A stretch of 64,000 bases of DNA, from positions 1,798,001 through 1,862,000 of the forward strand of contig NC_087252.1 of NCBI RefSeq assembly GCF_037042905.1, written 5' to 3'. The DNA comes from Lytechinus pictus. Taxonomy: Eukaryota. A model generated the notes under the pieces. That model was not told where the DNA came from. It did no database searches and saw only the letters and a list, made by a program, of their open reading frames with translations. The position numbers and the translations under genes were made by a program. Shown here in pieces: positions 8,946-63,910 of this stretch (its first letter is position 1; each line of letters opens with the position of its first letter).

Positions 8946-9767
8946 CTGTAAATGAGGCCAAAAAATACAATTTATGACACAGAGTCACAACTTATTTGAA
9001 CTTAGACTTAGAAAGACAGAATTTACTTTTCCGTAGATAAACCTGGAAACTTGGCTGCAGAAAATCTGCATTTTCCATTAGGATCTACATGTAGCCTAGC
9101 CTACAACCGGGTAGCCAAGTCTAGGCATCTCAAAATCTTAGATCCAGCAATAAAATCAAACAATCTTTTTTTCTCTGCAACATATCTGGCAAGTTCCCCC
9201 AAGTCTGCGCAGTCCCCTTTTCCTTGCCTACGCACACGCGTATCTGCGCGATTCTAGTATAAAGAAGATATACCAAACACAAACTTTACACATGCAATAC
9301 ATAGTCATACTCATAGACAGATATTCATTAAAAAACCTGACTCAAAATGGTGGAAAAATAATGTATTTTGGGCATTTCATGTAATGGCCTCAAATTGCAG
9401 CCTTTCTCATCAAAATCCCTGAATCGCATGCAAAGTGAACGGGTGTGCAGACATGGGGCACCATTTTTTGTTCAATCTGAATATGACTGCCCGAGGTTTT
9501 TTCCAAGAAAGTGATATTTCCTTCAATTTTTTTAATAGATATTTGGCACACTTACTTACAATAATATCAGGAACATTATGATTATCAACTGAAAGATTTT
9601 GTGAAATAAGAAAAATTCAACTCAAATTGCTTAATCGTTACGTAAAGGAGCCTCCTTTAAGAAGTCTGAGGCTCCTTTTCTATAAATCTAATATAGGCCT
9701 ACCATACCCCTGTCCCTGAAATAAACTGTTCAAATTAAATTAATGAAATTTGTTAGGTCTACCTCAC

Positions 9768-10258
9768 CTGGATAACCTTTCAACTTCTGGTGGAATTTCT
9801 CTTATTCTGTTCCCGCCCATGTGAAGGACCCGTAGAGAAGTAATTTCAGTCAACTGTACAGGAAAATTAAGGAATAAATTGCCACTAAAATTGAGAGTCT
9901 GTAATGCTTTGCATGTTCCAAATTCCTTTGGTAAAGAGTCACTATTCAAATGATTGTTTTTGCACGTTAGAATCCGCAAATGTGTCAGTTGTATCAACTC
10001 GTCTGGCAGTTTCGTTATTCTGTTTGTGCTCAAATCCAGCTCGATAATGTTCAAAAAGTTATTTATACTTGCAGGAATCGTGGATATATTGTTCCTACTG
10101 ATGTCAATAATTGCTAATCTCTCTTTGTGTTCGATTAAATCGTCAAAAGGAAAAACATCGATGCCTTTTCGGGAATACATTGCGACTCTTTGATTGTTGT
10201 TCGACTCGGTTCGCGACATGTCAGCGTCGGTTCGTCTCGATCGAGGTTTTCTTCGCAT
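9768..10258 (-). CDS. LRRC58: LRRC58 coding exon 1 (LRR repeats); start at ATG 10258, alternative ATG 10219
   Basis: LRR motifs (IDISRNNISTIP, LDLSTNRITKLP, LNFSGNLF, LHMGGNRIREIP); ends CCAG|GTGAG, phase 2. The ORF-track start at 10282 is a TTG. Confidence 0.88.
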
Positions 10259-11080
10259 CCCACGCCTTGTCCTTCGGCTCAAACAAACTCAAGCACGCGC
10301 TAGCCCTCCGACTCCGAGCAGCCGAACTTGATGACAGACTCTTGTTGAAGTTGTGAGAAAATCCATGTTCAAAATTTGTGCAGGAAGACGAACAACAATT
10401 TCTCAAAATCGAATAGAGTACCAGGTATGATGAATTTCACCAATAATATATAACAAATTGCTCCGAAAAGTTGATATTTAACAAGGACATGAAGGAGATG
10501 GTGGACCACGGCTGATGAGACGAACCGAACATGGGCAACAATAATGAGCTAGTCTATGAATCAGCTTGTAATTATCGGTAGCTGATTTCCGTTCTTTCAA
10601 ATGAAAGACATTCCTAATTTCAAAATGAAATTATTTTTGTTTCGAATAAAAAATACAGTCAAAACAATATTATGACTCTCAATATGTATTCAGAGACCGC
10701 ATATGCCTGTAAAACATCCCTTAGAATATGCGCTACATTTAGTTTTGTGAACACCGCATCGATTTTTAAGACTACTAGAACACGGTCACTTACGAAATCA
10801 CTCCCTCGAAGCATGATCACGTAACGATGACGTCATGAAAGATGACGAAGCAAGAAAATGGGTCAAATTTCATCATTGAGGATTAACTTTAATCTCGAGA
10901 CATTGGACACTAAGTACTGATCTTAGCTTAATTTTGACTATAACTATGAATGAATCAGCGGAGCCCCCCCCCAAAAAAAAAAAAAATGAGCCGGACCAGT
11001 TAAAGAGATCAGTAAATCCGAATCCAAAACGATCGAGGCAATTGCCGGGCAATTGTGGGGGCCAACAATTATGATCTATA

Positions 11081-19764: not shown

Positions 19765-20326
19765 TCATCTACTCCCACTTCTACTTCTTCTCCTCCTTCT
19801 TCTGTCTATGTTTTTTTTATCTTTTCTATCACTCTTCCTTTCTTTGTCCTTTCTCCTTCTTGACTCTTTATCATGATCATCCCTCCGATGGTGCCTGTCT
19901 TTAGATGGATCACGACTTCTGCGTCGTCTTCTACGTCTGTTCCTATCACCACTCCTGTCCCTCTTGGATTTCCCATCTTCACTATTCCTTCCTTCACTTC
20001 TCCCGGAATGTCTCCTTTCCCTACTGCTCCTGCGATGACCATTTTCATGCCGTCTACTCCTTTCAGCACTCGGTCTTCGCCTCCTCGTCGGTCTCCTGCG
20101 GCTCCGTCCTCCTCCTCCTCCTCCTCTTCTTATTGAATAATCTCTTTCATCGTCCCTACGTGGTTTCCTCGCGTCGGATCGTCTTCCTCTGTGTGTCTCT
20201 TCTTCGCTGCTGCTGCTTTCGCTTGAAGAACTGTCCGAATCATCAGAACTGCTGGAACTGTCCGATTCTGAGGAGCTTTCTTCGTCATCATCCTCGTCTC
20301 GTGACGGCTTCCTCCTTCGTTCAGAT
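19765..20326 (-). CDS. NKAPD1: NKAPD1-like terminal exon (Ser/Asp-rich then Arg/Ser/Lys-rich low complexity)
   Basis: Acceptor tttcatctcag|A in frame with ORF 19765..20361; ends at TAG. Total spliced CDS 969 nt. Confidence 0.82.
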
Positions 20327-21681: not shown

Positions 21682-21804
21682 CTCTGTTTCTTTCTTCTCC
21701 TGTCATGACCTTTGACCTCTGTCCCTTCATCACTGGTGTCATCCATGGATGACCTGTTAATGTTCTCCTCTGGATAGAGCTCCATAAAACCATTGTGACT
21801 CCAT
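21682..21804 (-). CDS. NKAPD1: NKAPD1-like coding exon 3
   Basis: Acceptor aattttag|A, donor GAG|GTAAAA; encodes RWSHNGFMELYPEE, matching the NKAPD1 motif RWGHSGYKELYPEE; 123 nt, phase 2-2. Confidence 0.88.
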
Positions 21805-22037
21805 CTAAAATTGATAAAAAATATTCATTCTCTTGTATACTGTCTGGATCAATTCGAGCGTTTTACTTTTTTTTTTCACCTCAGCATTTTATTTCTATCA
21901 TCATATTTCATATACCATCAGTTAGCTCAATAGATTTGTTAGTTTAGTAATTTGTGCATATCCTCCTCGTACATGTATTTCAATGGTCACTACAAATCAC
22001 ATGATGCCAGCTGTAATCGTACAATGATTTGAAGAAT

Positions 22038-25000
22038 GTGCTCCTTCCTAACCACCCATGTTATATCCCCCTTACCTCTCCATCTAAGTGCTCCCCCCTA
22101 ACCACCCATGTTACATCCCCCTTACCTCTCCATCTAAGTGCTCCCCCCTAACCACCCATGTTATATCCCCAATACCTCTCCATCTAAGTGCACCCCTAAC
22201 CATCCATGTTACATCCCCCTTACCTCTCCATCTAAGTGCTCCCCCCTAACCATCCATGTTACATCCCCCTTACCTCTCCATCTAAGTGCTCCCCCCTAAC
22301 CATCCATGTTACATCCCCCTTACCTCTCCATCTAAGTGCTCCCCCCTAACCATCCATGTTACATCCCCCTTACCTCTCCATCTAAGTGCTCCCCCCTAAC
22401 CATCCATGTTATATCCCCCTTACCTCTCCATCTAAGTGCACCCCCCTAACCACCCATGTTATATCCCCCTTACCTCTCCATCTAAGTGCTCCCCCCTAAC
22501 CACCCATGTTATATCCCCTTACCTCTCCATCTCAGTGCTCCCCCTAACCACCCATGTTACATCCCCCTTACCTCTCCATCTAAGTGCTCCCCCTAACCAC
22601 CCATGTTATATCCCCGTTACCTCTCCTTCTTAGTGCTCCCCCTAACCACCCATGTTATATCCCCCTTACCTCTCCATCTACGTGCTCCCCCTAACCACTG
22701 ATCCATGTTATATCCCCCTTACCTCTCCATCTAAGTGCTCCCCCCTAACCACCCATGTTACATCCCCCTTACCTCTCCATCTAAGTGTTCCCCCTAACCA
22801 CCCATGTTATATCCCCTTACCTCTTCATCTAAGTGCTCCTTCCTAACCACCCATGTTATTTCCCCCTTACCTCTCCATGTCAGTGCTCCTTCCTAACCAT
22901 CCATGTTATTTCCCCCTTACCTCTCCATCTAAGTGCTCCTTCCTAACAATCCATGTTATATCCCCCTTACCTCTCCATCTAAGTGCTCCTTCCTAACCAT
23001 CCATGTTATATCCCCCTTACCTCTCCATCTAAGTGCTCCTTCTAACCAACCATGTTATATCCCCCTTACCTCTCCATCTAAGCGCTCCTTCCTAACCACC
23101 CATGTTATATCCCCCTTACCTCTCCATTTAAGTGCTCCTTCCTAACCACCCATGTTATATCCCCCTTACCTCTCCATCTAAGTGCTCCCCCTAACCATCC
23201 ATGTTATATCCCCCTTACCTCTCCATCTAAGTGCTCCTTCTTAACCATCCATGTTATATCCCCCTTACCTCTCCATCTAAGTGCTCCCCCTAACCATCCA
23301 TGTTATATCCCCCTTACCTCTCCATCTAAGTGCTCCCCCCTAACCATCCATGTTACATCCCCCTTACCTCTCCATCTAAGTGCTCCCCCCTAACCATCCA
23401 TGTTACATCCCCCTTACCTCTCCATCTAAGTGCTCCTTCCTAACCATCCATGTTATATCCCCTTACCTCTCCATTTAAGTGCTCCCCCAACCATCCATGT
23501 TATATCCCCCTTACCTCTCCATCTAAGTACTCCTTCCTAACCATCCATGTTATATCCCCCTTACCTCTCCATCTAAGTGCTCCTTCCTAACCATCCATGT
23601 TACATCCCCCTTACCTCTTCATCTAAGTGCTCCCCCCTAACCATCCATGTTATATCCCCTTACCTCTCCATCTAAGTACTCCTTCCTAACCATCCATGTT
23701 ATATCCCCCTTACCTCTCCATTTAAGTGCTCCCCCCTAACCATCCATGTTATATCCCCTTACCTCTCCATCTAAGTACTCCTTCCTAACCATCCATGTTA
23801 CATCCCCCTTACCTCTTCATCTAAGTGCTCCCCCCTAACCATCCATGTTATATCCCCTTACCTCTCCATTTAAGTGCTCCCCCAACCATCCATGTTATAT
23901 CCCCCTTACCTCTCCATCTAAGTACTCCTTCCTAACCATCCATGTTATATCCCCCTTACCTCTCCATTTAAGTGCTCCCCCCTAACCATCCATGTTACAT
24001 CCCCCTTACCTCTCCATCTAAGTGCTCCCCCAACCATCCATGTTATATCCCCCTTACCTCTCCATCTAAGTACTCCTTCCTAACCATCCATGTTATATCC
24101 CCCTTACCTCTCCATCTAAGTACTCCTTCCTAACCATCCATGTTATATCCCCTTACCTCTCCATTTAAGTGCTCCTTCCTAACCACCCATGTTATATCCC
24201 CTTACCTCTCCATCTAAGTGCTCCTTCCTAACCATCCATGTTATATCCCCCTTACCTCTCCATCTAAGTGCACCCCCCTAACCATCCATGTTATATCCCC
24301 CTTACCTCTTCATCTAAGTGCACCCCCCTAACCACCCATGTTATATCCCCTTACCTCTCCATCTAAGTGCTCCTTCCTAACCATCCATGTTATTTCCCCC
24401 TTACCTCTCCATCTAAGTGCTCCCCCCTAACCACCCATGTTACATCCCCCTTACCTCTCCATCTAAGTGCTCCTTCATAACCATCCATGTTATATCCCCT
24501 TACCTCTCCATCTAAGTACTCCTTCCTAACCACCCATGTTATATCCCCTTACCTCTCCATCTAAATGCACCCCCCTAACCACCCATGTTATATCCCCTTA
24601 CCTCTCCATCTAAGTGCTCCTTCCTAACCATCCATGTTATCTCCCCCTTACCTCTCCATCTAAGTGCTCCTTCCTAACCACCCATGTTATATCCCCTTAC
24701 CTCTCCATCTAAGTGCTCCTTCCTAACCATCCATGTTATATCCCCCTTACCTCTCCATCTAAGTGCTCCCCCAACCATCCATGTTATCTCCCCCTTACCT
24801 CTCCATCTAAGTGCTCCCCCCTAACCACCCATGTTATATCCCCCTTACCTCTCCATCTAAGTGCTCCTTCCTAACCATCCATGTTATATCCCCCTTACCT
24901 CTCCATCTAAGTGCTCCTTCCTAACCATCCATGTTATATCCCCTTACCTCTCCATCTCAGTGCTCCTTCCTAACCATCCATGTTATATCCCCCTTACCTC

Positions 25001-26592
25001 TCCATCTAAGTGCTCCTTCCTAACCATCCATGTTATATCCCCCTTACCTCTCCATCTCAGTGCTCCTTCCTAACCATCCATGTTATATCCCCCTTACCTC
25101 TCCATCTCAGTGCTCCTTCCTAACCATCCATGTTATATCCCCCTTACCTCTCCATCTAAGTGCTCCCCCTAACCATCCATGTTATATCCCCCTTACCTCT
25201 CCATCTCAGTGCTCCTTCCTAACCATCCATGTTATATCCCCCTTACCTCTCCATCTCAGTGCTCCTTCCTAACCACCCATGTTATATCCCGCTTACCTCT
25301 CCTTCTTAGTGCTCCTTCCTAACCATCCATTTTATATCCCCCTTACCTCTCCATCTAGGTGCTCCTTCCTAACCATCCATTTTATATCCCCCTTACCTCT
25401 CCATCTAAGTGCTCCTTCCTAACCATCCATGTTACATCCCCCTTACCTCTCCATCTAAGTACTCCTTCCTAACCATCCATGTTATATCCCCCTTACCTCT
25501 CCATCTAAGTGCTCCCCCCTAACCATCCATGTTATATCCCCCTTACCTCTCCATCTCAGTGCTCCTTCCTAACCATCCATGTTATATCCCGCTTACCTCT
25601 CCTTCTTAGTGCTCCTTCCTAACCATCCATTTTATATCCCCCTTACCTCTCCATCTAGGTGCTCCTTCCTAACCATCCATTTTATATCCCCCTTACCTCT
25701 CCATCTAAGTGCTCCTTCCTAACCATCCATTTTATATCCCCCTTACCTCTCCATCTAGGTGCTCCTTCCTAACCATCCATTTTATATCCCCCTTACCTCT
25801 CCATCTAAGTGCTCCTTCCTAACCATCCATGTTATATCCCCCTTACCTCTCCATCTAAGTGCTCCCCCCTAACCATCCATGTTATATCCCCCTTACCTCT
25901 CCATCTCAGTGCTCCTTCCTAACCATCCATGTTATATCCCGCTTACCTCTCCTTCTTAGTGCTCCTTCCTAACCATCCATTTTATATCCCCCTTACCTCT
26001 CCATCTAGGTGCTCCTTCCTAACCATCCATTTTATATCCCCCTTACCTCTCCATCTAAGTGCTCCCCCCTAACCATCCATTTTATATCCCCCTTACCTCT
26101 CCATCTAAGTGCTCCTTCCTAACCATCCATGTTATATCCCCCTTACCTCTCCATCTAAGTGCACCCCCCTAACCACCCATGTTATATCCCCGTTACCTCT
26201 CCTTCTTAGTGCTCCCCCTAACCACCCATGTTATATCCCCCTTACCTCTCCATCTAAGTGCTCCTTCCTAACCATCCATGTTATATCCCCCTTACCTCTC
26301 CATCTACGTGCTCCCCCCTAACCATCCATGTTACATCCCCCTTACCTCTCCATCTAAGTGCTCCCCCTAACCACCCATGTTATATCCCCCTTACCTCTCC
26401 ATTTAAGTGCTCCTTCCTAACCATCCATGTTATATCCCCCTTACCTCTCCATTTAAGTGCTCCCCCTAACCATCCATGTTATATCCCCCTTACCTCTCCA
26501 TCTAAGTGCTCCCCCTAACCACCCATGTTATATCCCCCTTACCTCTCCATCTAAGTGCTCCCCCTAACCACCCATGTTATATCCCCCTTACA
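22038..26592. repeat. About 50-bp minisatellite, about 90 copies, in an NKAPD1 intron
   Basis: Unit ccttacctctccatctaagtgctccttcctaaccatccatgttatatccc, with variants. Confidence 0.98.
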
Positions 26593-26740
26593 GTGTAGGA
26601 AACACAAGAGGAAGGTGATTATGCCCCCATGACAGTCCAAATGCCCCTAATTTTGCCCCCAAATGCATGCTTTTGTCGCAACCATTATTTCTAAAGTTGC
26701 CCCAGATCTGTCACAAAAATATTTAAGATTATTTCATTAC

Positions 26741-26884
26741 CTCTCCATCTGAGTGTTCATGCCCTGTCGACCACCTCGATTCAACCTGCGTTGATTCCAT
26801 CTTTCCCGGCTGTTATTGTTTCCACCGTATATTTCTCTGGGAGAGTCACTGTACATCTGCCCATATCTGACTGGCCCTCGTGAC
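26741..26884 (-). CDS. NKAPD1: NKAPD1-like coding exon 2
   Basis: Acceptor ttttttctactacaag|G, donor GAG|GTAATG; 144 nt, phase 2-2, open frame RSRGPVRYGQ...NTQME. Confidence 0.72.
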
Positions 26885-27101: not shown

Positions 27102-27968
27102 TTGATTGATTGATAAAAAATTAACGACACTATCAACACATGCGTGTCATATAAGTGTCGGACAGTTAATCTGGAAAGGTTACTATAATACAGTACAAAT
27201 TACCCTAATGCAACTTTACAAAGGAACAGGATTATAAATAAGTGATTATCAGTAATAAATTAATACGTTAACTACTTCCCCGGGATAACTTCCCTACTCT
27301 TTACGAAAAGAGGAGTAGGTTTTTTAACGTGCAAATGGTGTGACTCTCCCTTACACGGGACCGACGGCTTAGAGTCTCCTCCGAAAGACTAGACAATTGG
27401 AATAAAATACCTTGCCCAAGGGTATACCTGTTGTGATTGGGATTCGAACAGTTTCCCACCTAAAATCTAATAAACAGATTGATCTCCTTTAGGAAATTTA
27501 CAATACATAATCGTGAAATATCTCTAAATAATGTCTTAAGGTCAGGAACATCATAAAAGTTAGTACGAATATGTGCAAAATCAGCACATTCAATGAGGAT
27601 GTGTTTAACTGTAAGTGTACAATTACATGATATGCATTGAGGTGGATTTTCTCTTGCAAATAAATATGCATGTGTTAAGTAAGAATGTCCAATACGAGCA
27701 CGGGTCAATACAATGTCTTCCCGTCGTTTAGCTAATGGAAGAGTATTTTGTGATTCAAGTCTTGGTTGGTGTTTATGGAGTTTATTATTAGGATTTAGAT
27801 CCCATGATGTTTGCCATTTATTTATAATATAAGTATTAACCTTTGATTTTAGATCAGTGTAAGGTATCTGTATTTCTGTTATATCCAGATCTAAAGCTTC
27901 TTTAGCTAACTCATCAGCTTTTTCATTACCTTGAATACCTGTATGGCTTGGTATCCAAACAAATATTA
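27102..27968 (-). mobile_element. 5'-truncated I/Nimb-group LINE (end of RNase H plus CCHC knuckle, 3' UTR)
   Basis: WIPSHTGIQGNEKADELAK (RNase H) ... RARIGHSYLTH...CISCNCTLTVKHILIEC; 3' tail atcaatcaatcaac. Confidence 0.85.
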
Positions 27969-28352: not shown

Positions 28353-28492
28353 CTGTTGCTTGGTACATGTGATCTCTTTTCTTTTTTCTTCTCCCACATC
28401 TCTTCTTCTTCTTGTAGTCTGTTGTGAGTCTCGGTGTGATGAAGAACATTCTTCAGCAGCCTCCTATCAAGGTACCTTACCTTCACAGACAT
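28353..28492 (-). CDS. NKAPD1: NKAPD1/C11orf57-like coding exon 1
   Basis: MSVKVRYLDRRLLKNVLHHTETHNRLQEEEEMW resembles the NKAPD1 N-terminus ([22 protein letters not shown], from memory). Donor CAG|GTATA, phase 2; an acceptor near 28524 implies an upstream UTR exon. Confidence 0.85.
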
Positions 28493-29946: not shown

Positions 29947-31611
29947 CAGTAGAGGCGCACGGCAAATATGGGAGACTCTCTCCAATAGGGGAGACAATCT
30001 CCCACATTGGAGACTTGCTTTGCAAAAGGACAAAAGAAACAACACCAACAAAAGCATGATTTTTTCCACCAAAAATTTTGTCTCACTGAGGTCAGAATAG
30101 CCTGGAGGCGTCTGGGGAGTGAAAGTAATATACTGTACGTATGGTCACTCCCCTAACGCCTGGCATTGTGAGGTATAGGCTCCTACGTACCGAGGGAAAA
30201 GGCAACTATAAAAATGCGCCAAACTGCTAGTTATGTTAAGAATCTGAGGTCACGACTGCTGTACATGGGTAACAATATTGGTTGGCAACGTTTGGCAAAA
30301 AATGGATAGTTATGGTTACAAATGACGAATAAATTATATGAAGTAATAAAAGTAGAAGAGAGTTTACTTACACTTGTTGACATCGCCATCTTTGATCCTT
30401 TGTTAATGCAACCTAGTTACGTGACGCGTATAGAGGGCGGCAAAATCATGAGCGGTGCTAGATTAAAAAGTGCTAAAATGTCCCGCTTCAACCACTGAAC
30501 TATAAATACGTGGAAGTCGTGTACCGGTACAACCAAGCAAAGCATCGCCGGCGAACTCGATAAGTCACATGACCGCCGCCATTTTGCTAGGTCAATTGTT
30601 CGAGAACGCGCCGTAGAAGGCAAGATGCAATGTTTTCTCTATGTATTTCTAGTTCAGTGGTTGAAGCGGTGCTAGATTAAAAAGTGCTAAAATGTCCCGC
30701 TTCAACCACTGAACTAGAAATACATAGAGAAAACATATTGCATCTTGCCTTCTACGGCGCGTTCTCGAACAATTGACCTAGCAAAATGGCGGCGGTCATG
30801 TGACTTATAGAGTTCGCCGGCGATGCTTTGCTTGGGTGTACCCGTACACGACTTCCACGTATTTATAGTTCAGTGGTTGAAGCGGGACATTTTAGCACTT
30901 TTTAATCTAGCACCGCTCATGATTTTGCCGCCCTCTATACGCGTCACGTAACTAGGTTGCATTAACAAAGGATCAAAGATGGCGATGTCAACAAGTTGTA
31001 AGTAAACTCTCTTCTACTTTTATTACTTCATATAATTTATTCGTCATTTTGTAACCATAACTATCCATTTTTTGCCAAACGTTGCCAACCAATATTTTTA
31101 CCCATGTACAGCAGTCGTGACCTCAGATTCTTAACATAACTAGCAGTTTGGCGCATTTTTATAGTTGCCTTTTCCCTCGGTACGTAGGAGCCTATACCTC
31201 ACAATGCCAGGCGTTAGGGGAGTGACCATACGTACAGTATATTACTTTCACTCCCCAGACGCCTCCAGGCTAGGTCAGAAGCCCATTTGTTTTGTGTGTG
31301 ATTGACAACAAAAATCCTTATCAAAACAAATGTGTTGTACTTGTAGACGGTGAATTTTTAAAGTAGACGGTGAGGAGTAATTTTTCATGAGGAATCTGCT
31401 TATCACATTTTTATTTGCCGCCAAGGAAATCCTTTTGCAGCAAATGTAAACAAAGGAAATTGGTCTCCAAAACTGGAGACTGTCTCTGAAATTGGATACC
31501 CAAATTCTTTACAACTGTCATAAGTCTCTGATATATTGGAGATAATCTCCCACATGTCATGATTGGAGACAGTCTCCAATATTATTATTTATTGGCCGTG
31601 CACCTCTACTG
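29947..31611. mobile_element. MITE with CAG termini and 5-bp TSD (hAT-like), host of the palindromic element
   Basis: TIR cagtagaggcgcacggc / gccgtgcacctctactg; TSD tagaa; subterminal ggagac/gtctcc motifs. Confidence 0.8.
30098..31272. mobile_element. Fold-back (palindromic) non-autonomous DNA transposon
   Basis: TAGCCTGGAGGC...GCCTCCAGGCTA, arms about 572 bp, 27-bp loop, flanked by the 8-bp direct repeat ggtcagaa. Confidence 0.9.
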
Positions 31612-33780: not shown

Positions 33781-34133
33781 ACAGTCGTAGTGAACTTCTT
33801 GGGGGTAATCGCAACCTTTCTAAAAACTGAACGTCTTTGGACACATACGCAACATACTTTTTAAATGGTTTGGTCGGAAACCCGTTGGAAGTCTATTATC
33901 GGAGAGTTGTATTTTCTGACTTAACATGTCTTGAAATGAGCTATCCTTTTGGCGCCAATAATCTATTTCATATTGTCATGGTAACATGTAATCGATATAT
34001 CGCCGTTCATCGACCTCTCCGATACCAAACACTTGTCACCACGAAGCGAATCGCGATCGGGATATTCATCAGTTGGTTAGTATCGTTGGGTTTATGCTTC
34101 AACAAGTCAGCAATTTAGAAGAAAGTCCAAACT
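33781..34133 (+). pseudogene. Truncated A-type GPCR pseudogene (end of TM1 to ECL2)
   Basis: Near-identical blocks to A1/A2 (NNLFHIVMVTC, YIAVHRPLRYQTLVTTKRIAIG) with internal deletions, frameshifts and DRY>NRY; cut off by a transposon at 34134. Confidence 0.9.
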
Positions 34134-36836: not shown

Positions 36837-38889
36837 TCCCGACCTTTCGTTGGAGAACGCGAACGCTTATTTACGACGTTAGTTGATTTTGGAAGAGACT
36901 TTTGGGCCCTTCGTCATGGTCGTAAAACTCTGTCCTGCAATGCAAATTGTGTGACATGAGATTTTTTTTTCGTTTCGCATCTGCAACGGAAACATTCAAC
37001 ATGCGTTTCGTGTGCAAAATTCTGGTTGCTACTTTGGTAACAGCGATATATCCGATCTAGGACGACTTTCCAAAGCCACATTAATTTTGGTTCCTCCCAG
37101 AGCTCGAGAGGCCGCCCGGGGGGCCCACTTCCATTGAAGAGTGGATACCAGGCGCGACCACGCGTAAAAAGGGAAAGAGTGGGCAAGTACGTTACGTATA
37201 GGCCCGTTATAAGGGTGTCAAAAACGATGTTTAAAATACTGAAAAGGAGGATATGTTTTCAATACTTGTAGGGTTTCACAATCTAAATACTTGTTAAGAG
37301 ATGCATTTTCATCACTGGCGTAAATCCCGGGGGGGGATGGGGGGGATATATCCCCCCCCACTTTTCGAGGAGGGGGGGATGGCCTGTACAAATATCCCCC
37401 CCCCCACTTTTTACGAAAGAAATGAGAAAAAAATCACAAGAGATAATTGTTTTATTGGTGAAAATTCTTCCAAAAATACCGCTTAACAAATAAAATATTA
37501 TTGAATCATAAAATGCAAATAAAGAGCCAGTTCACCATTTCCAAACGAAACACTTATGTCCTTATTATAACATTGAAGAGAAACCCCCGTTTCTTCCAAT
37601 TCATCAATGTTGGGGTTTTTGGAAAGGGATTAAGATGGAATGTCAAAATTTTTTGAATGTAATCTCTAATAAAACCATTAAACCATCATGGGGTAAAAAA
37701 GATAATAATATTGGAGGGGTATTTGCCATATGGACATACAGTGGCGTAACTACGGGGGACATGGGGGGCACATCCCCCCCCCCCCCCCCATCGGCTGACC
37801 AAAAAAAAATATTATTCATTATAATGTTATATTATAATTATGTTAAGTTACATTACATAAGAAACATTTTTATCATAACTTTATGAAACATAATTTGCCC
37901 AGGGCCTACGTCTTCATTGTTCCTGGTGCTCGCATTGTCTGTTTAACGAAATATATAATCCTGTTGTACTAAAACATCCCGTTTTCAAGTCGATATAAAC
38001 CAAATATATTTCCTAGCACTTGAGCTATCATTGTTGTAGTGACATATGCTTCTTTTTCATGACTCAAAAGTGATTGCCCCATGTTAAGGTCTTCGTATAT
38101 ATGAAACATTTCCTGTCCGTGATTACGTTCGCATTAGTGGATTGGTGAGATATGTCTGCTCTTCATGAATTCCTAAAATCAGTCCTTAAAATGGGTTACA
38201 GCCCGATAGACCGCGGGTCCGATAGACCGCGGGTCCGATAGTCCGCGGGTCCGATAGACCGCGGGTCCGATAGACCGCGGGTCCGATAGACCGCGGGTCC
38301 GATAGTCCGCGGGTCCGATAGTCCGCGGTGTGTGTAAAATTATGATCAGCCACAGTGAGATCCAGTGTCATCAAGAGGTCAAAAGGTCAATGATACGAGT
38401 CCATGGGGTTCTATAACGATGACCCAAAGGACAATCGCCCCCTGACAACTACTTCAAGGAAAATATTATCCCCATATTTTTATCGTCGGGGACTGTTACC
38501 CCCCCCCCCAGAAATTTACCCTCTATATGCGAGCGCGAAGCGTGAGCTGATATTTTATTATTATTTTAACCTAGGATCGAGGCATTTTAGGCCTAAGGAT
38601 ATTTTGTCATCATAAAAGAATGATGACTATCTTCATTTTCTTTTCCATAAACGTGTCAATTTATTTATGAAAAAGGGAAAATTTAGTTATTATGAATTCA
38701 TAAAAAATTTATTTCATATTTATTAATCTAATAAGCCTAATGAGTGGGTGAAATTTGTTGACAGTGTATGAGGCCTGAAAACTGGAAATTTTAAGTTTTT
38801 TTGAAATCATGAATAGGATTCATTGGTTGATATATTTTTAGCAAATAACGCGAGGGAATTTAAGTAGTTTGTTATAGAATTAATATATA

Positions 38890-41084: not shown

Positions 41085-41580
41085 CCCTCTTTCGTTTCCC
41101 ATCTCTTATTCTTTTTTTTTTCTTTCTCTTATCCTCAGTCCCCTTCCTTTTTCTTTCTTTCTCTCTTTCTTTCCCCCTCTTACTCTCCCCTTGTCTTCCT
41201 CTCTTCTTTTCCTTCCTCCTCTCTCTCTCTTTTTCTTCTCTTTATTTTCCCCCTTTCTTCTCTTTTTTCTTGTCTTCATTTCCCCCTTTTCTTCTCTTTT
41301 TTCCTCATCTTTTCTTTCCCCCTTTTCTTCTCTTTTTCCCGTCTTTTCTTTCTCTCTTTTCCTCTCACTTTTCTTTTTTTTTCTTTTCTTCCTTTTCCCT
41401 CCTCTCTTTTTTTCTCTTCTTTCCCCCTTTTCTTCTCCATTTTCTTTGTCTTTCCTTTCCCCCTTTTCCTTCTCTTTTTTTTCTTCTCTCCCTCTCCTTC
41501 CCCCTCTTACTCTCTTTTCTATTCTCTTCTTTTCCCATCTTCCTCTCTCTCTTTTTATTCTCTTCCCCCCTCTTTTTTTG
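41085..41580. repeat. About 490-bp polypyrimidine/polypurine tract
   Basis: Almost exclusively C/T on the plus strand. Confidence 0.9.
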
Positions 41581-42854
41581 AGCTGGGGTGGGGGGTGAGA
41601 CAGTTCCCCTCGGCCCCCCATGGATCCGCACCTGATGATAGAACCCCATGGTCTCGTATCATTTGACCTTTGGACCTCTCGATGACATTTGATATATCTG
41701 ATCATAATTTTACACACACTGCGGACTATCGGACCCGCGGTCTATCGGACCTGCGGACTATCGGACCCGCGGTCTATCGGACCCGCTGACTATCGGACCC
41801 GCGGTCTATCGGACCCGCGGTCTATCGGGATGTCCCCGAAACCTTAGAATGCCCCACTTCAGGTCTGAATTATCTAAGTTTTCAGCTTGCGCTTCGCGCT
41901 CGCATTGTTTAGCGAGACAGGTACCTATCATGATTACACAAATTTGATTATAATGTCCCTTTTTAGGTGTGAATATAAACAAATTTCAGCTCGCGCTTCG
42001 CTCTCGCTTTATTTGATCAGTGAGATACATATCCGTTTAATGACATTGTCCTTAAAATGTCTCTATTAGGTCACTCACTCAGTCATTCAAAAATTTTGCT
42101 GGTGCCCCCCCCCCAATTGCCGTGACCCACGGTACGCCACTGTGGACATATCAATGACAATTCCTTGCATATCTAAAAACATGATTGCAAAAAAATGCCA
42201 AAATATTTCAGTCATCCCCCCCCCCACCCATCAACACGGATTTACGCCAGTGATTTTCATAATCTGGGAAAGCCTTGCTTCCCTTGTTTAGGATGCTTTT
42301 CGAAACCGCATGGTCGTGCCTGGTATCCAATCGTCAATGGAAGTGCCCCCCCCCCGGGGGAATTCGAATCTAATCCCACATTTCTAGGGAAAGTAAAACA
42401 TAATGCCCATTACATTGTGTGCTAGAGGCATATCGTTTGTGTAGAAGGAGTAAACAAAAGAAAAAACCCCGCAAATTCGACTGAATTTCAGACGTATATG
42501 CCTATTGTATATGCATGTGTACATATCAACGCATGCGAAATGGTTTCGGCTGGAGAGGTGTTCTGACCCATGGAATCAATCGCCAGTGATCCACCAATAA
42601 TCCACATTAAATGCAATATCGATTCGATGGACTGTAATGATCTACATCTAAGCCTTAATTCAGTAAGTTTTTCCTCACTCAATATGTACTCGATTTGTTT
42701 TAAAAACCACTTTCTTATCCATATCATAATCTATTGTGGGCCCTGCATTTCGAATATCTACAGCCAGCTGTCATAGTAGAGGCTCGCCGCCGGCTCAGGG
42801 GGCATATACATTCATGAAAACGGGATTTAATCTCGCAGGATGGTGCAGGTGTCG

Positions 42855-60711: not shown

Positions 60712-60797
60712 TATTAAACTAGACAACATGCCTGAGGGGAAAATGAATGAGAATGGAATGAACCTGGTGAAGTGATGTTGCTATGACAGATGAACAA

Positions 60798-60980
60798 TGT
60801 ATGAGGATTAGTGGAGATGGAATGAAGGATGGGATTAAGACAATTTATGAGGATTAGTGGAGATGGAATGAAGGATGGGATTAAGACAATGTATGGGGAT
60901 TAGTGGATATGGAATGAAGGATGGGATTAAGACAATGTATGAGGATTAGTGGAGATTGAATGAAGGATGGGATTAAGACA
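60798..60980. repeat. 46-bp tandem repeat, 4 copies
   Basis: Unit tgtatgaggattagtggagatggaatgaaggatgggattaagacaa. Confidence 0.92.
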
Positions 60981-62275: not shown

Positions 62276-63910
62276 CTCAATGATGCAATCAATCGAACAA
62301 TTCAACAACCACTCAATGATGCAATCAATCTAACAATTTAACAACCACTCAATGATGCGATCAATCTAACAATTCAACAACCACTCAATGATGCAATCAA
62401 TCTACAATTCAACAACCACTAAATGATGCAATCAATCTACAATTCGACAAGAACCACTAAATGATGCAATTTATCTACAATTCAACAACCACTCAATGAT
62501 GCAATCAATCTACAATTCAACAACCACTAAATGATGCAATCAATCTACAATTCGACAAGAACCACTAAATGATGCAATTTATCTACAATTCAACAACCAC
62601 ACAATGATGCAATCAATCTACAATTCAACAACCACTCAATGATGCAATCAATCTACAATTCCACAACCACTCAATGATGCAATAAATCTACAATTAAACA
62701 ACCACTCATTGATGCAATCAATCTACAATTTAACAACCACTCAATGATGCAATCAATCTACAATTCAACAACCACTCAATGATGCAATCAATCTACATTT
62801 CAACAACCACTCAATGATGCAATCAATCTACAATTCAACAACCACTCAATGATGCAATCAATCTACAATTCAACAACCACTCAATGATGTAATCAATCTA
62901 CAATTCAACAACCACTCAATGATGCAATCAATCTACAATTCAACAACCACTCAATGATGCAATCAATCTACAATTCAACAACCACTCAATGATGCAATCA
63001 ATCTACATTTCAACAACCACTCAATGATGCAATCAATCTACAATTCAACAACCACTCAATGATGCAATCAATCTACAATTCAACAACCACTCAATGATGC
63101 AATCAATCTACAATTCAACAACCACTCAATGATGTAATCAATCTATAATTCAACAACCACACAATGATGCAATTTATCTACAATTAAACAACCACTCAAT
63201 GATGCAATTTATCTACAATTCAACAACCACTCAATGATGCAATCAATCTACAATTCAACAACCACTCAATGATGCAATCAATCTACAATTCAACAACCAC
63301 TCAATGATGCAATCAATCTACATTTCAACAACCACTCAATGATGCAATCAATCTACAATTCAACAACCACTCAATGATGCAATCAATCTACAATTCAACA
63401 ACCACTCAATGATGCAATCAATCTACAATTCAACAACCACTCAATGATGTAATCAATCTACAATTCAACAACCACACAATGATGCAATTTATCTACAATT
63501 CAACAACCACTCAATGGTGCAACCAATCTACAATTCAACAACCACTCAATGATGCAACCAATCTACAATTCAACAACCACTCAATGATGCAATAAATCTA
63601 CAATTCAACAACCACTCAATGATGTAATCAATCTACAATTCAACAACCACACAATGATGCAATTTATCTACAATTAAACAACCACTCAATGATGCAATCA
63701 ATCTACAATTCAACAACCACTCAATGATGCAATCAATCTACAATTCAACAACCACTTAATGATGCAATAAATCTACAATTCAACAACCACTCAATGATGC
63801 AATCAATCCACAATTCAACAACCACTCAATGATGCAATCAATCTACAATTCAACAACCACTCAATGATGCAATCAATCTACAATTCAACAACCAGTCAAT
63901 GATTCAATCA
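62276..63910. repeat. 35-bp minisatellite, about 46 copies
   Basis: Unit caacaaccactcaatgatgcaatcaatctacaatt. Confidence 0.97.

Follow-up and report, generated by a model that had tools for sequence, protein, structure and literature searches.

The second intron of an NKAPD1-like gene in a 64-kb stretch of Lytechinus pictus DNA (the window, meaning the whole stretch that was analysed) was found to hold a non-coding minisatellite, the units of which join a copy of the end of exon 2 to a 5' splice-site motif. It was concluded that the array is probably a tolerated by-product, which would have been born by a templated insertion, would have expanded afterwards and would have a small net effect on splicing. 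The array may be regarded as a displaced relative of the known splice-junction-repeating minisatellites. The general kind, minisatellites that repeat a splice donor, is already known, and a regulatory role of the present array is unproven. As a natural experiment in the choice of 5' splice sites outside mammals the locus is a clean one: a weak authentic donor precedes about 88 stronger and near-identical ones, which bears on whether the 'first donor wins' rule and exon definition also apply to an echinoderm. In addition, the edges of the array provide what seems an unusually legible record of the start of a minisatellite, comprising a duplication, a 12-nt filler templated nearby and microhomologies.

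The host gene and the layout of its second intron

The gene holding the array was assigned, from its predicted product, as an orthologue of NKAPD1/C11orf57. Splicing of exons 1-4 (Table 1) resulted in a 322-aa open reading frame (ORF) with the hallmarks of NKAPD1/C11orf57, namely an N-terminal LLKNV.HHT.THNRLQEE.EMW block, an RW.H.G..ELYPEE block and then a basic tail. Exon 1 showed 82% identity over the first 44 residues to C11orf57 of S. purpuratus, a protein that carries Pfam PF15692, and the alignment with the S. purpuratus protein was ungapped across both exon 2 junctions, including that between exons 1 and 2. Exon 3 alone matched Pfam PF15692 (NKAP) with an E value of 5.5e-4 and 20.9 bits, which was under the 27-bit cutoff because a single exon was scanned; its NKAP-type block was kept in the alignment of urchin, starfish and other orthologues. 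A homology search with the low-complexity exon 4 ORF returned nothing usable, and searches from the S. purpuratus and starfish orthologues gave neither a full-length Lytechinus protein nor genomic context. Two Logan contigs, reached via exon-1-like ORFs, ended before exon 2 and were without the repeat unit, and exact Logan look-ups with four ORFs of the window yielded no contig.

Table 1. Positions in the window of the gene features and of the parts of intron 2.
Feature	Positions	Strand	Remarks
Exon 1, coding part	28353-28492	-	ATG at 28492; donor CAG/GTATAT; within the 322-aa spliced ORF
Exon 2 (144 nt)	26741-26884	-	ends ...ATG GAG AG
22-nt core common to all units	26737-26758	-	final 18 nt of exon 2 + GTAA; 20 of 22 positions shared with the unit
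Authentic 5' splice site GAG/GTAATG	26735-26743	-	donor G at 26740; read-through stop TAA at 26739-26737
Unique intron spacer, 149 nt	26592-26740	-	between true donor and array; alignment to the unit no better than shuffles
Minisatellite, ~4.5 kb	22038-26591	-	91 head-to-tail ~50-nt units + one extra 38-nt piece = S(FS)x91
Unique 3' part of intron 2	21805-22037	-	up to acceptor TTTTAG/A; one AATAAA at 21893
Exon 3	21682-21804	-	encodes (R)WSHNGFMELYPEE..., conserved NKAP-type block; acceptor-side start 21804
Exon 4, coding part	19765-20326	-	acidic/Ser-rich, then Arg/Ser/Lys-rich tail, then stop

The array was detected over its whole extent as one tandem repeat with a period of 50, 91.8 copies and 93% matches (Tandem Repeats Finder). 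Its first base was the G of GTAAGG (26591) and its last base was the C of GAGCAC (22038); therefore, the structure reads S(FS)x91, where S (GTAAGGGGG...GGAGCAC) stands for an intronic piece of 38 nt and F (TTAGATGGAGAG) for a filler of 12 nt. The array was flanked by ...CCTACACT and ATTCTTCAAA..., and the spacer separating it from the authentic donor agreed with the distance of about 150 nt given in the first-pass annotation, as did the position of that donor. While AGAGGTAA was invariant in 91/91 units, 60 distinct sequences were present among the 91, with a patchy distribution of the variant types and G-type units at both edges. Such a pattern appears to be that of the usual minisatellite turnover. 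The sense strand of the array was composed of 74% purines and 6% C. Several other minisatellites and transposon remains were also present in the 64-kb window.

Other classes of element were considered for the array. The possibility that the repeat is coding was rejected, since a period of 50 is not divisible by 3 and no ORF exceeded 86 aa. A structured RNA family was rejected with no match in Rfam, and so was a canonical G-quadruplex (loops of up to 12 nt), none being found.

The match to the exon end and the decoy donors

A 24-nt probe derived from the unit was searched for with up to 3 mismatches. It matched 91 times within the array, always on the minus strand, and once in the rest of the 64 kb, at 26735-26758, which is the exon 2 end followed by GTAATG; 0.00 matches were expected in shuffled sequence. 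The best local alignment of the unit with the exon end covered 26758-26737 with the previously reported identity of 20/22 and a score of 34, when shuffled sequences scored 15.8 +/- 2.4 (maximum 27). With any rotation of the unit allowed, the analytical chance expectation of 20 or more identities in 22 nt came to 1.4e-3 over the window and to 3e-6 within the 300 nt that lie upstream of the array, and the exon-end match was judged not to be a chance one.

No extension of the match into either flank was found, the flanks of the core scoring no better than shuffles. A simple duplication of the junction was rejected because these flanks were not similar to the junction region. The unit had earlier been described as built from the exon end. 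A copy of the exon end fused to a donor was indeed present in it, but only 22 of the 50 nt matched the junction, the other 28 nt having no counterpart there, and only 12 nt need copying: beyond a single S, the sole missing part was the 12 nt that matched the exon at 11 of 12 positions. The exon context of F was GAACAC-TCAGATGGAGAG-GTAA, in which the filler was flanked by microhomology, a 5/6 match to the end of S and a 4/4 match to its start. Neither S nor F was present anywhere else in the 64 kb.

The motif GAG/GTAAG (GGTAAG) was kept in 88 of the 91 units, in line with the approximately 90 tandem decoy 5' splice sites proposed before. The +1 G of the first decoy was located at 26542 and that of the last at 22075, which places the decoys from 199 nt to ~4.7 kb downstream of the true donor. 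The last decoy lay 271 nt from the acceptor, and a proximity rule would favour this one.

The strength of the donors was expressed as U1 duplex energies, in place of MaxEntScan scores, using the textbook sequence of the U1 5' end. The predicted energy was -10.1 kcal/mol for the decoys versus -6.7 kcal/mol for the true donor, and all real donors of the gene ranged from -6.7 to -7.7 kcal/mol. The decoys had a +5G and 7 contiguous U1 pairs, whereas the true donor was without the +5G and formed 6 pairs, which confirmed that the GTAAG of the repeat is nearer to the U1 consensus. After each decoy came a G-run, and such runs are known to act as intronic splicing enhancers. Since the decoys are predicted to pair with U1 better than any real donor of the gene and are followed by G-runs, their complete silence is not guaranteed.

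Reading through the true donor gave AGG TAA, and the ORF holding exon 2 ended at 26737, so the immediate in-frame stop noticed earlier was found where it had been claimed. With the true donor the exon measured 144 nt, and with the decoys it would measure from 342 nt (the first decoy) to 4809 nt. A transcript spliced from any decoy would retain the AGG TAA stop, and the conserved RWSHNGFMELYPEE block would be lost together with the basic/RS-like tail; the gene model was in agreement with the first-pass annotation on this point as well.

The donor motif was kept no better than the rest of the unit, and selection on the donors was without a sign in the sequence. Variable columns amounted to 3/9 in the donor and 16/41 elsewhere (Fisher p = 1), and 34 of the 50 nine-column windows were as invariant as the donor or more so. 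Recursive splice sites (ratchet points), which consist of a polypyrimidine tract and an AG immediately before GTAAGT, were also considered and rejected; the sequence upstream of each GTAAG was purine-rich.

Origin of the array and alternative explanations

The microhomology flanking F in the exon suggests that a templated insertion came first and that expansion followed. We proposed that the 38-nt intronic S, starting with GTAAGG and ending with GAGCAC, was duplicated with the 12-nt F placed between the copies, F being copied by a template switch from the exon 2 end ~150 nt upstream. The switch would have been primed on microhomology between the exon GAACAC and the S-end GAGCAC, and between the GTAA of the true donor and that of the S start. 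Microhomology-driven template switching is described as an established source of templated insertions (PMC8421209). The joining of F to the S start would have created the strong donor GAG/GTAAGG by accident, and unequal exchange or slippage would have led to the 91 S-F copies, with turnover presumably still ongoing. U1 snRNP probably binds the decoys, and the authentic donor, which is the first after the 3' splice site of the exon and gives the 144-nt exon, would still be used. With its AGG TAA stop, any leaked decoy transcript would be removed by nonsense-mediated decay (NMD). Overall, the gene would be little affected, the array being tolerated rather than built.

It was considered unlikely that the array is a functional cis-regulator that sets the NKAPD1 output, with ~88 donors recruiting U1 and either diverting transcripts to NMD isoforms in a copy-number-dependent manner or holding U1 locally, where it could assist the weak true donor or limit premature polyadenylation. 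Such a role would be in keeping with decoys that are stronger than a real donor devoid of +5G and are followed by G-runs, with the retention of GGTAAG in nearly all units, with the immediate stop that decoy use leaves in the mRNA, and with the use of the first pseudo-sites in IFI6 and CBS (PMC1557585). However, the donor motif showed no excess conservation inside the array, the known precedents are mostly silent past the first one or two copies, and the exon would already measure 342 nt with the first decoy and several kb with later ones. The suppression of premature polyadenylation was rejected as a role, since neither AATAAA nor ATTAAA was found in or before the array. It seems very unlikely that the 88 U1-binding sites form a cis platform making the NKAPD1 mRNA level dependent on allele length, through a leak to the stop isoforms or a reinforced weak donor; if true, this would be a heritable and fast-mutating expression dial born of a repair scar. 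A global U1 sink was found implausible because ~88 sites on one pre-mRNA species are few compared with the very large U1 snRNP pool.

Two further explanations concern the exon likeness itself. Dispersed satellites and transposons are recognized by copies at unrelated loci and by terminal repeats or a target-site duplication at the edges. That the unit is a dispersed satellite or a transposon-borne minisatellite that landed in the intron, its likeness to the exon being coincidental or secondary, would fit the repeat-rich genomes of sea urchins and the other repeats of the window, yet it was regarded as highly improbable: a match this close within 300 nt has the very low chance expectation given above, neither S nor F recurred in the 64 kb, the array edges were devoid of terminal inverted repeats and other hallmarks of a transposon, and they coincided with the limits of the exon match, which a foreign insertion does not predict. 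A metagenome scan with a 26-nt piece of the unit gave no match, a weak negative. The flow of sequence could also have been the reverse, the array or its founder being first and a short gene-conversion tract rewriting the last codons of exon 2. Four consecutive residues of exon 2 do differ from S. purpuratus (NTQM versus GREV), exactly inside the 22-nt core and between at least 14 identical residues on each side. Such a conversion was considered very unlikely, however, since the unit has TAG where the exon has CAG, in frame, so that a direct conversion would have created a stop codon; the position of the array edges at the match ends would also be left unexplained. Moreover, the Asn that stands a few residues ahead of [DE]-[RK]-W in L. 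pictus was found again in orthologues of other phyla, which suggests that the L. pictus version of the exon 2 end is the older one.

Comparison with known systems

Human minisatellites in which the first monomer spans an exon-intron boundary have been described in F7 (IVS7, 37 bp x 5-9), IFI6/6-16 (25 pseudo-sites), CBS (IVS13, 15-20 repeats), LMNB2 (100 bp x 10-15) and PDGFA (intron 4, 81 bp x 16-18) (PMC1557585). The authentic donor alone was used in F7, LMNB2 and PDGFA, and two pseudo-sites were used as well in IFI6 and CBS (PMC1557585). The downstream pseudo-sites of F7, with consensus values of up to 91, did not compete, a rule of silence that comes from mammalian cells, a 37-nt spacing and identical sites (PMC1557585). 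In amphioxus, the AG/GT signals of minisatellites called "mirages" are copies from the borders of exons; unstable length, concerted evolution and divergent edge units are reported for them, as is undisturbed normal splicing.

The sea-urchin array shares with both groups a short unit, an intronic position beside a coding exon, and units that reiterate the exon end with a splice signal. As in the human F7-type cases, the array comes just after an exon, the unit consists of an exon end and a GT donor, many pseudo-sites follow the true one, and their use would change or truncate the product. In contrast to these, the array does not adjoin the exon, no edge monomer spanning the authentic boundary and a 149-nt unique spacer lying between; 22 of the 50 nt of the unit are junction-derived, instead of the whole unit being homologous to the junction; the copy number of 91 is several times higher; and the decoys are predicted to be stronger than the true donor, not identical to it. 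For the human cases, splicing was measured. The amphioxus mirages resemble it as minisatellites of an invertebrate deuterostome carrying exon-border AG/GT signals, but they are plain duplications that include the border, when the sea-urchin unit is a chimera of intronic sequence and a 12-nt exon filler situated off the border.

The poison exons of SR-type genes are cassette exons that are conserved between species and bounded by an acceptor and a donor of their own. The NKAPD1-like gene recalls the poison-exon/NMD autoregulation of SR proteins in that it encodes a protein with an Arg/Ser-rich tail and that a premature stop would be added by the alternative event. Such an exon was rejected here: the unit was without a usable acceptor, and the array held no cassette exon with an acceptor of its own and no polypyrimidine tract.

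The proposed birth of the array is closest to the templated insertions attributed to MMBIR or polymerase-theta end joining, in which a short copy of a nearby template lies between the breakpoints, with a microhomology of 4-6 nt at each (PMC8421209, PMC2943611). The events described in that literature are single repair scars, whereas the scar proposed for L. pictus would have seeded a duplication that grew to a 4.5-kb array.

Host gene of the array

Four minus-strand exons were joined by consensus splice sites into a 322-aa ORF (see the table). An exon 1 query retrieved P0002, a 136-aa Strongylocentrotus purpuratus protein called 'uncharacterized protein C11orf57' by its source, with 82% identity; this protein carries PF15692, and starfish NKAPD1-like proteins were matched too. 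Judged by sequence, the host gene is tied to NKAPD1/C11orf57 by PF15692, P0002 and the starfish matches, and the 82% match would be consistent with an echinoid source. The alignment to P0002 was ungapped over the E1/E2 and E2/E3 junctions and so confirmed the donor of exon 2 and the acceptor of exon 3. The literature mentioning NKAPD1 characterised no function for it.

Features of the host gene and of other parts of the window (a slash marks the splice position)
Feature	Position	Strand	Remarks
Exon 1	28492-28353	minus	part of spliced 322-aa ORF
Exon 2	26884-26741	minus	part of spliced 322-aa ORF
Exon 3	21804-21682	minus	part of spliced 322-aa ORF; Pfam PF15692 (NKAP), E = 5.5e-4
Exon 4	20326-19765	minus	part of spliced 322-aa ORF
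Strong donor-like site AAG/GTAAGG	28478-28486	minus	exon 1, codons 4-6 (GTG AAG GTA AGG); conserved coding sequence (KVRY)
Open 166-codon remnant in intron 1	27463-27960	minus	sense orientation; resembles the C-terminus of a retrotransposon ORF, with a below-cutoff hit to its RNase H tail (Pfam PF00075, E = 2.7e-4)
Near-perfect palindrome	30098-31272		~1.6 kb upstream of NKAPD1 start; arms: outer 225 nt, 100% complementary; inner 269 nt, 98% complementary
3.6-kb element, inverted ends of ~200 nt	38198-38414 and 41638-41833		16-nt tandem repeat CCGATAGACCGCGGGT in the ends, 7-8 copies each; many GCGAGCGCGAAGCGCGAGC motif copies inside; resembles a transposon carrying subterminal repeats
CT-rich low-complexity block	41143-41565		inside the 3.6-kb element
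Minisatellite	62276-63910		35 nt x 46.5 copies, 93% matches
Minisatellite	60794-60980		46 nt x 4.1 copies, 95%
Neighbour gene fragment	33837-34115	plus	rhodopsin-type GPCR piece, 7tm_1, E = 9e-9
Neighbour gene fragment	9767-10282	minus	leucine-rich-repeat exon, LRR_8, E = 9.5e-12

Array structure and its match to exon 2

A single array at 22038-26591 was delimited by Tandem Repeats Finder (period 50, 91.8 copies, 93% matches), which also assigned to it a 149-nt higher-order period. The spacer from the true donor was 149 nt, in line with the ~150 nt of the first-pass annotation. Cutting of the array yielded 91 units, most of them 50 nt long (range 48-53 nt), representing 60 distinct sequences with a mean pairwise identity of ~0.89. 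The unit variants were distributed in patches, and 'GGGGGG'-type units dominated at both edges. The ORFs were short and the period was not a multiple of three. Additionally, the telomere-like hexamer TTAGGG occurred 39 times on the minus strand of the array, where canonical G-quadruplex motifs were absent at loop lengths of up to 12 nt but numerous when loops of up to 25 nt were allowed. On the plus strand each unit resembled a 3' splice site, with CTAAC (86 copies) followed by a ~30-nt pyrimidine-rich stretch and AG, and the antisense of each unit also contained CTTACCT, the donor complement. No plus-strand gene was seen running through the array.

The end of exon 2 reads ...GAACACTCAGATGGAGAG/GTAATG and the repeat unit reads GAGCACTTAGATGGAGAG/GTAAGG. 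The top local alignment of the two confirmed the 20 of 22 identical nucleotides noticed at first reading (26758-26737), with a score of 34 against 15.8 ± 2.4 for shuffled sequences. Matches of 20/22 or better, with the unit taken in any rotation, would be expected by chance 1.4e-3 times in the window and 3e-6 times in the 300 nt upstream of the array. Since the score exceeded the shuffles and the chance expectation was low, the match is real, its extent being limited to 22 of the 50 nt. Beyond this 22-nt core, lenient scoring found no likeness to the unit in the exon upstream or the intron downstream; the distal flank was equally dissimilar, as was the 149-nt spacer. The claim that the unit was built from the exon end holds for the core, but not for the rest of the unit, which is unlike the junction.

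A 24-nt unit probe (up to 3 mismatches, in the window) matched 91 times within the array, each time in minus-strand orientation, and its sole match outside was at 26735-26758 (0.00 expected from shuffles); matches of a 25-nt probe from the other half of the unit were confined to the array in the window. Neither inverted repeats nor further hallmarks of a transposon were found around the array, which matched no Rfam family, and on the evidence of the window it was considered very unlikely that the unit is a dispersed repeat.

Decoy donors and origin of the array

As proposed at first reading, approximately 90 tandem decoy 5' splice sites were present, GGTAAG being kept in 88 of the 91 units and GAGAGGTAAGGGG in 81. 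With the textbook U1 5'-end sequence, the predicted duplex energy was -10.1 kcal/mol for the decoy and -6.7 kcal/mol for the true exon-2 donor, in agreement with the claim that the decoy is closer to the U1 consensus; the donors of exons 1 and 3 gave -7.7 and -6.9 kcal/mol. Four or five consecutive G followed each decoy, and G runs of this sort are known as intronic enhancers. Reading through the true donor gave AGG TAA, and therefore any decoy-spliced mRNA would stop after exon 2, losing the RWSHNGFMELYPEE block and the tail; both the stop and its consequence had been deduced correctly from the sequence. Exon 2 would measure 342 nt if the first decoy were used and 4809 nt if the last were, the latter lying 271 nt from the acceptor.

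The sense strand was 74% purine (42% G, 6% C), so the units contained neither an acceptor nor a recursive splice site, and no polyadenylation hexamer was found inside or before the array. Variable columns numbered 3 of 9 in the donor and 16 of 41 elsewhere (Fisher p = 1.0; 59 units of exactly 50 nt), no more variant alleles than in the donor window occurred in 34 of the 50 circular nine-column windows, and other blocks, e.g., TAACATGG, were as invariant as the donor. Because the donor columns varied no less than the rest of the unit, the array shows homogenisation without special care for the donor. The suggested copy-number-tunable splicing/NMD rheostat or U1 snRNP sink was thus unsupported by the array; with precedents mostly against it, a functional decoy array was judged improbable.

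The first base of the array was the G of GTAAGG (26591), preceded by ...CCTACACT, and its last base was the C of GAGCAC (22038), followed by ATTCTTCAAA...; these edges therefore gave the layout S(FS)x91, where S was a 38-nt intronic piece (GTAAGGGGG to GGAGCAC) and F a 12-nt filler (TTAGATGGAGAG). The exon counterpart of F (TCAGATGGAGAG) was 11/12 identical, preceded by GAACAC (5/6 match to the end of S) and followed by GTAA (4/4 match to the start of S). Such flanking microhomologies are the signature expected of a template switch, and the array boundaries probably bear out an origin by templated insertion. We proposed that a polymerase switched from the end of S to the exon ~150 nt upstream, re-primed there and, once 12 nt had been copied, resumed at the start of S, and that the resulting S-F-S would later have been enlarged by unequal exchange. 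Passages in PMC8421209 and PMC2943611 treat templated insertions by microhomology template switching as established. The strong donor would then be an accident of joining F, the source of GAG, to S, whose GTAAGG start was already in place. Taken as one joint reading, a tolerated by-product born by templated insertion was considered rather likely.

The opposite flow, in which the array rewrote the end of exon 2, was also weighed. L. pictus has ...RQGM-NTQM-ERWSH where S. purpuratus has ...RQGM-GREV-ERWSH, the stretch being otherwise identical with at least 14 identical residues on each side, and the four NTQM codons (26746-26757, minus strand) lie exactly inside the core. This coincidence could reflect a rewritten exon; however, the unit carries an in-frame TAG opposite the exon CAG, other phyla again show an Asn a few residues ahead of [DE]-[RK]-W, and the edge structure fits copying from exon to array, leaving the opposite flow a very small probability. 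The array could instead have copied a lineage-specific exon end, which, if true, would place it after the lineages split.

Comparison with splice-junction minisatellites

Borensztajn et al. 2006 listed genes in which a minisatellite begins with a monomer spanning the exon-intron boundary, namely F7 (37 bp x 5-9), IFI6/6-16 (25 pseudo-sites), CBS (15-20 repeats), LMNB2 (10-15 x 100 bp) and PDGFA (16-18 x 81 bp) (PMC1557585). The authentic donor alone was used in F7, LMNB2 and PDGFA, and the first two pseudo-sites were used besides it in IFI6 and CBS; across 50 constructs the most upstream functional site won, and pseudo-sites with a consensus value of up to 91 did not compete (PMC1557585). The amphioxus counterparts, named 'mirages', reportedly are unstable in length, have divergent edge units and leave normal splicing undisturbed (PMC3087553). 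Unlike the boundary minisatellites, the L. pictus array is set 149 nt away from the exon, only 22/50 nt of its unit are junction-derived, it has 91 copies, and its decoys surpass the true donor in predicted U1 pairing. It is a variant of the known splice-junction kind rather than a member, because its first monomer does not span the boundary.
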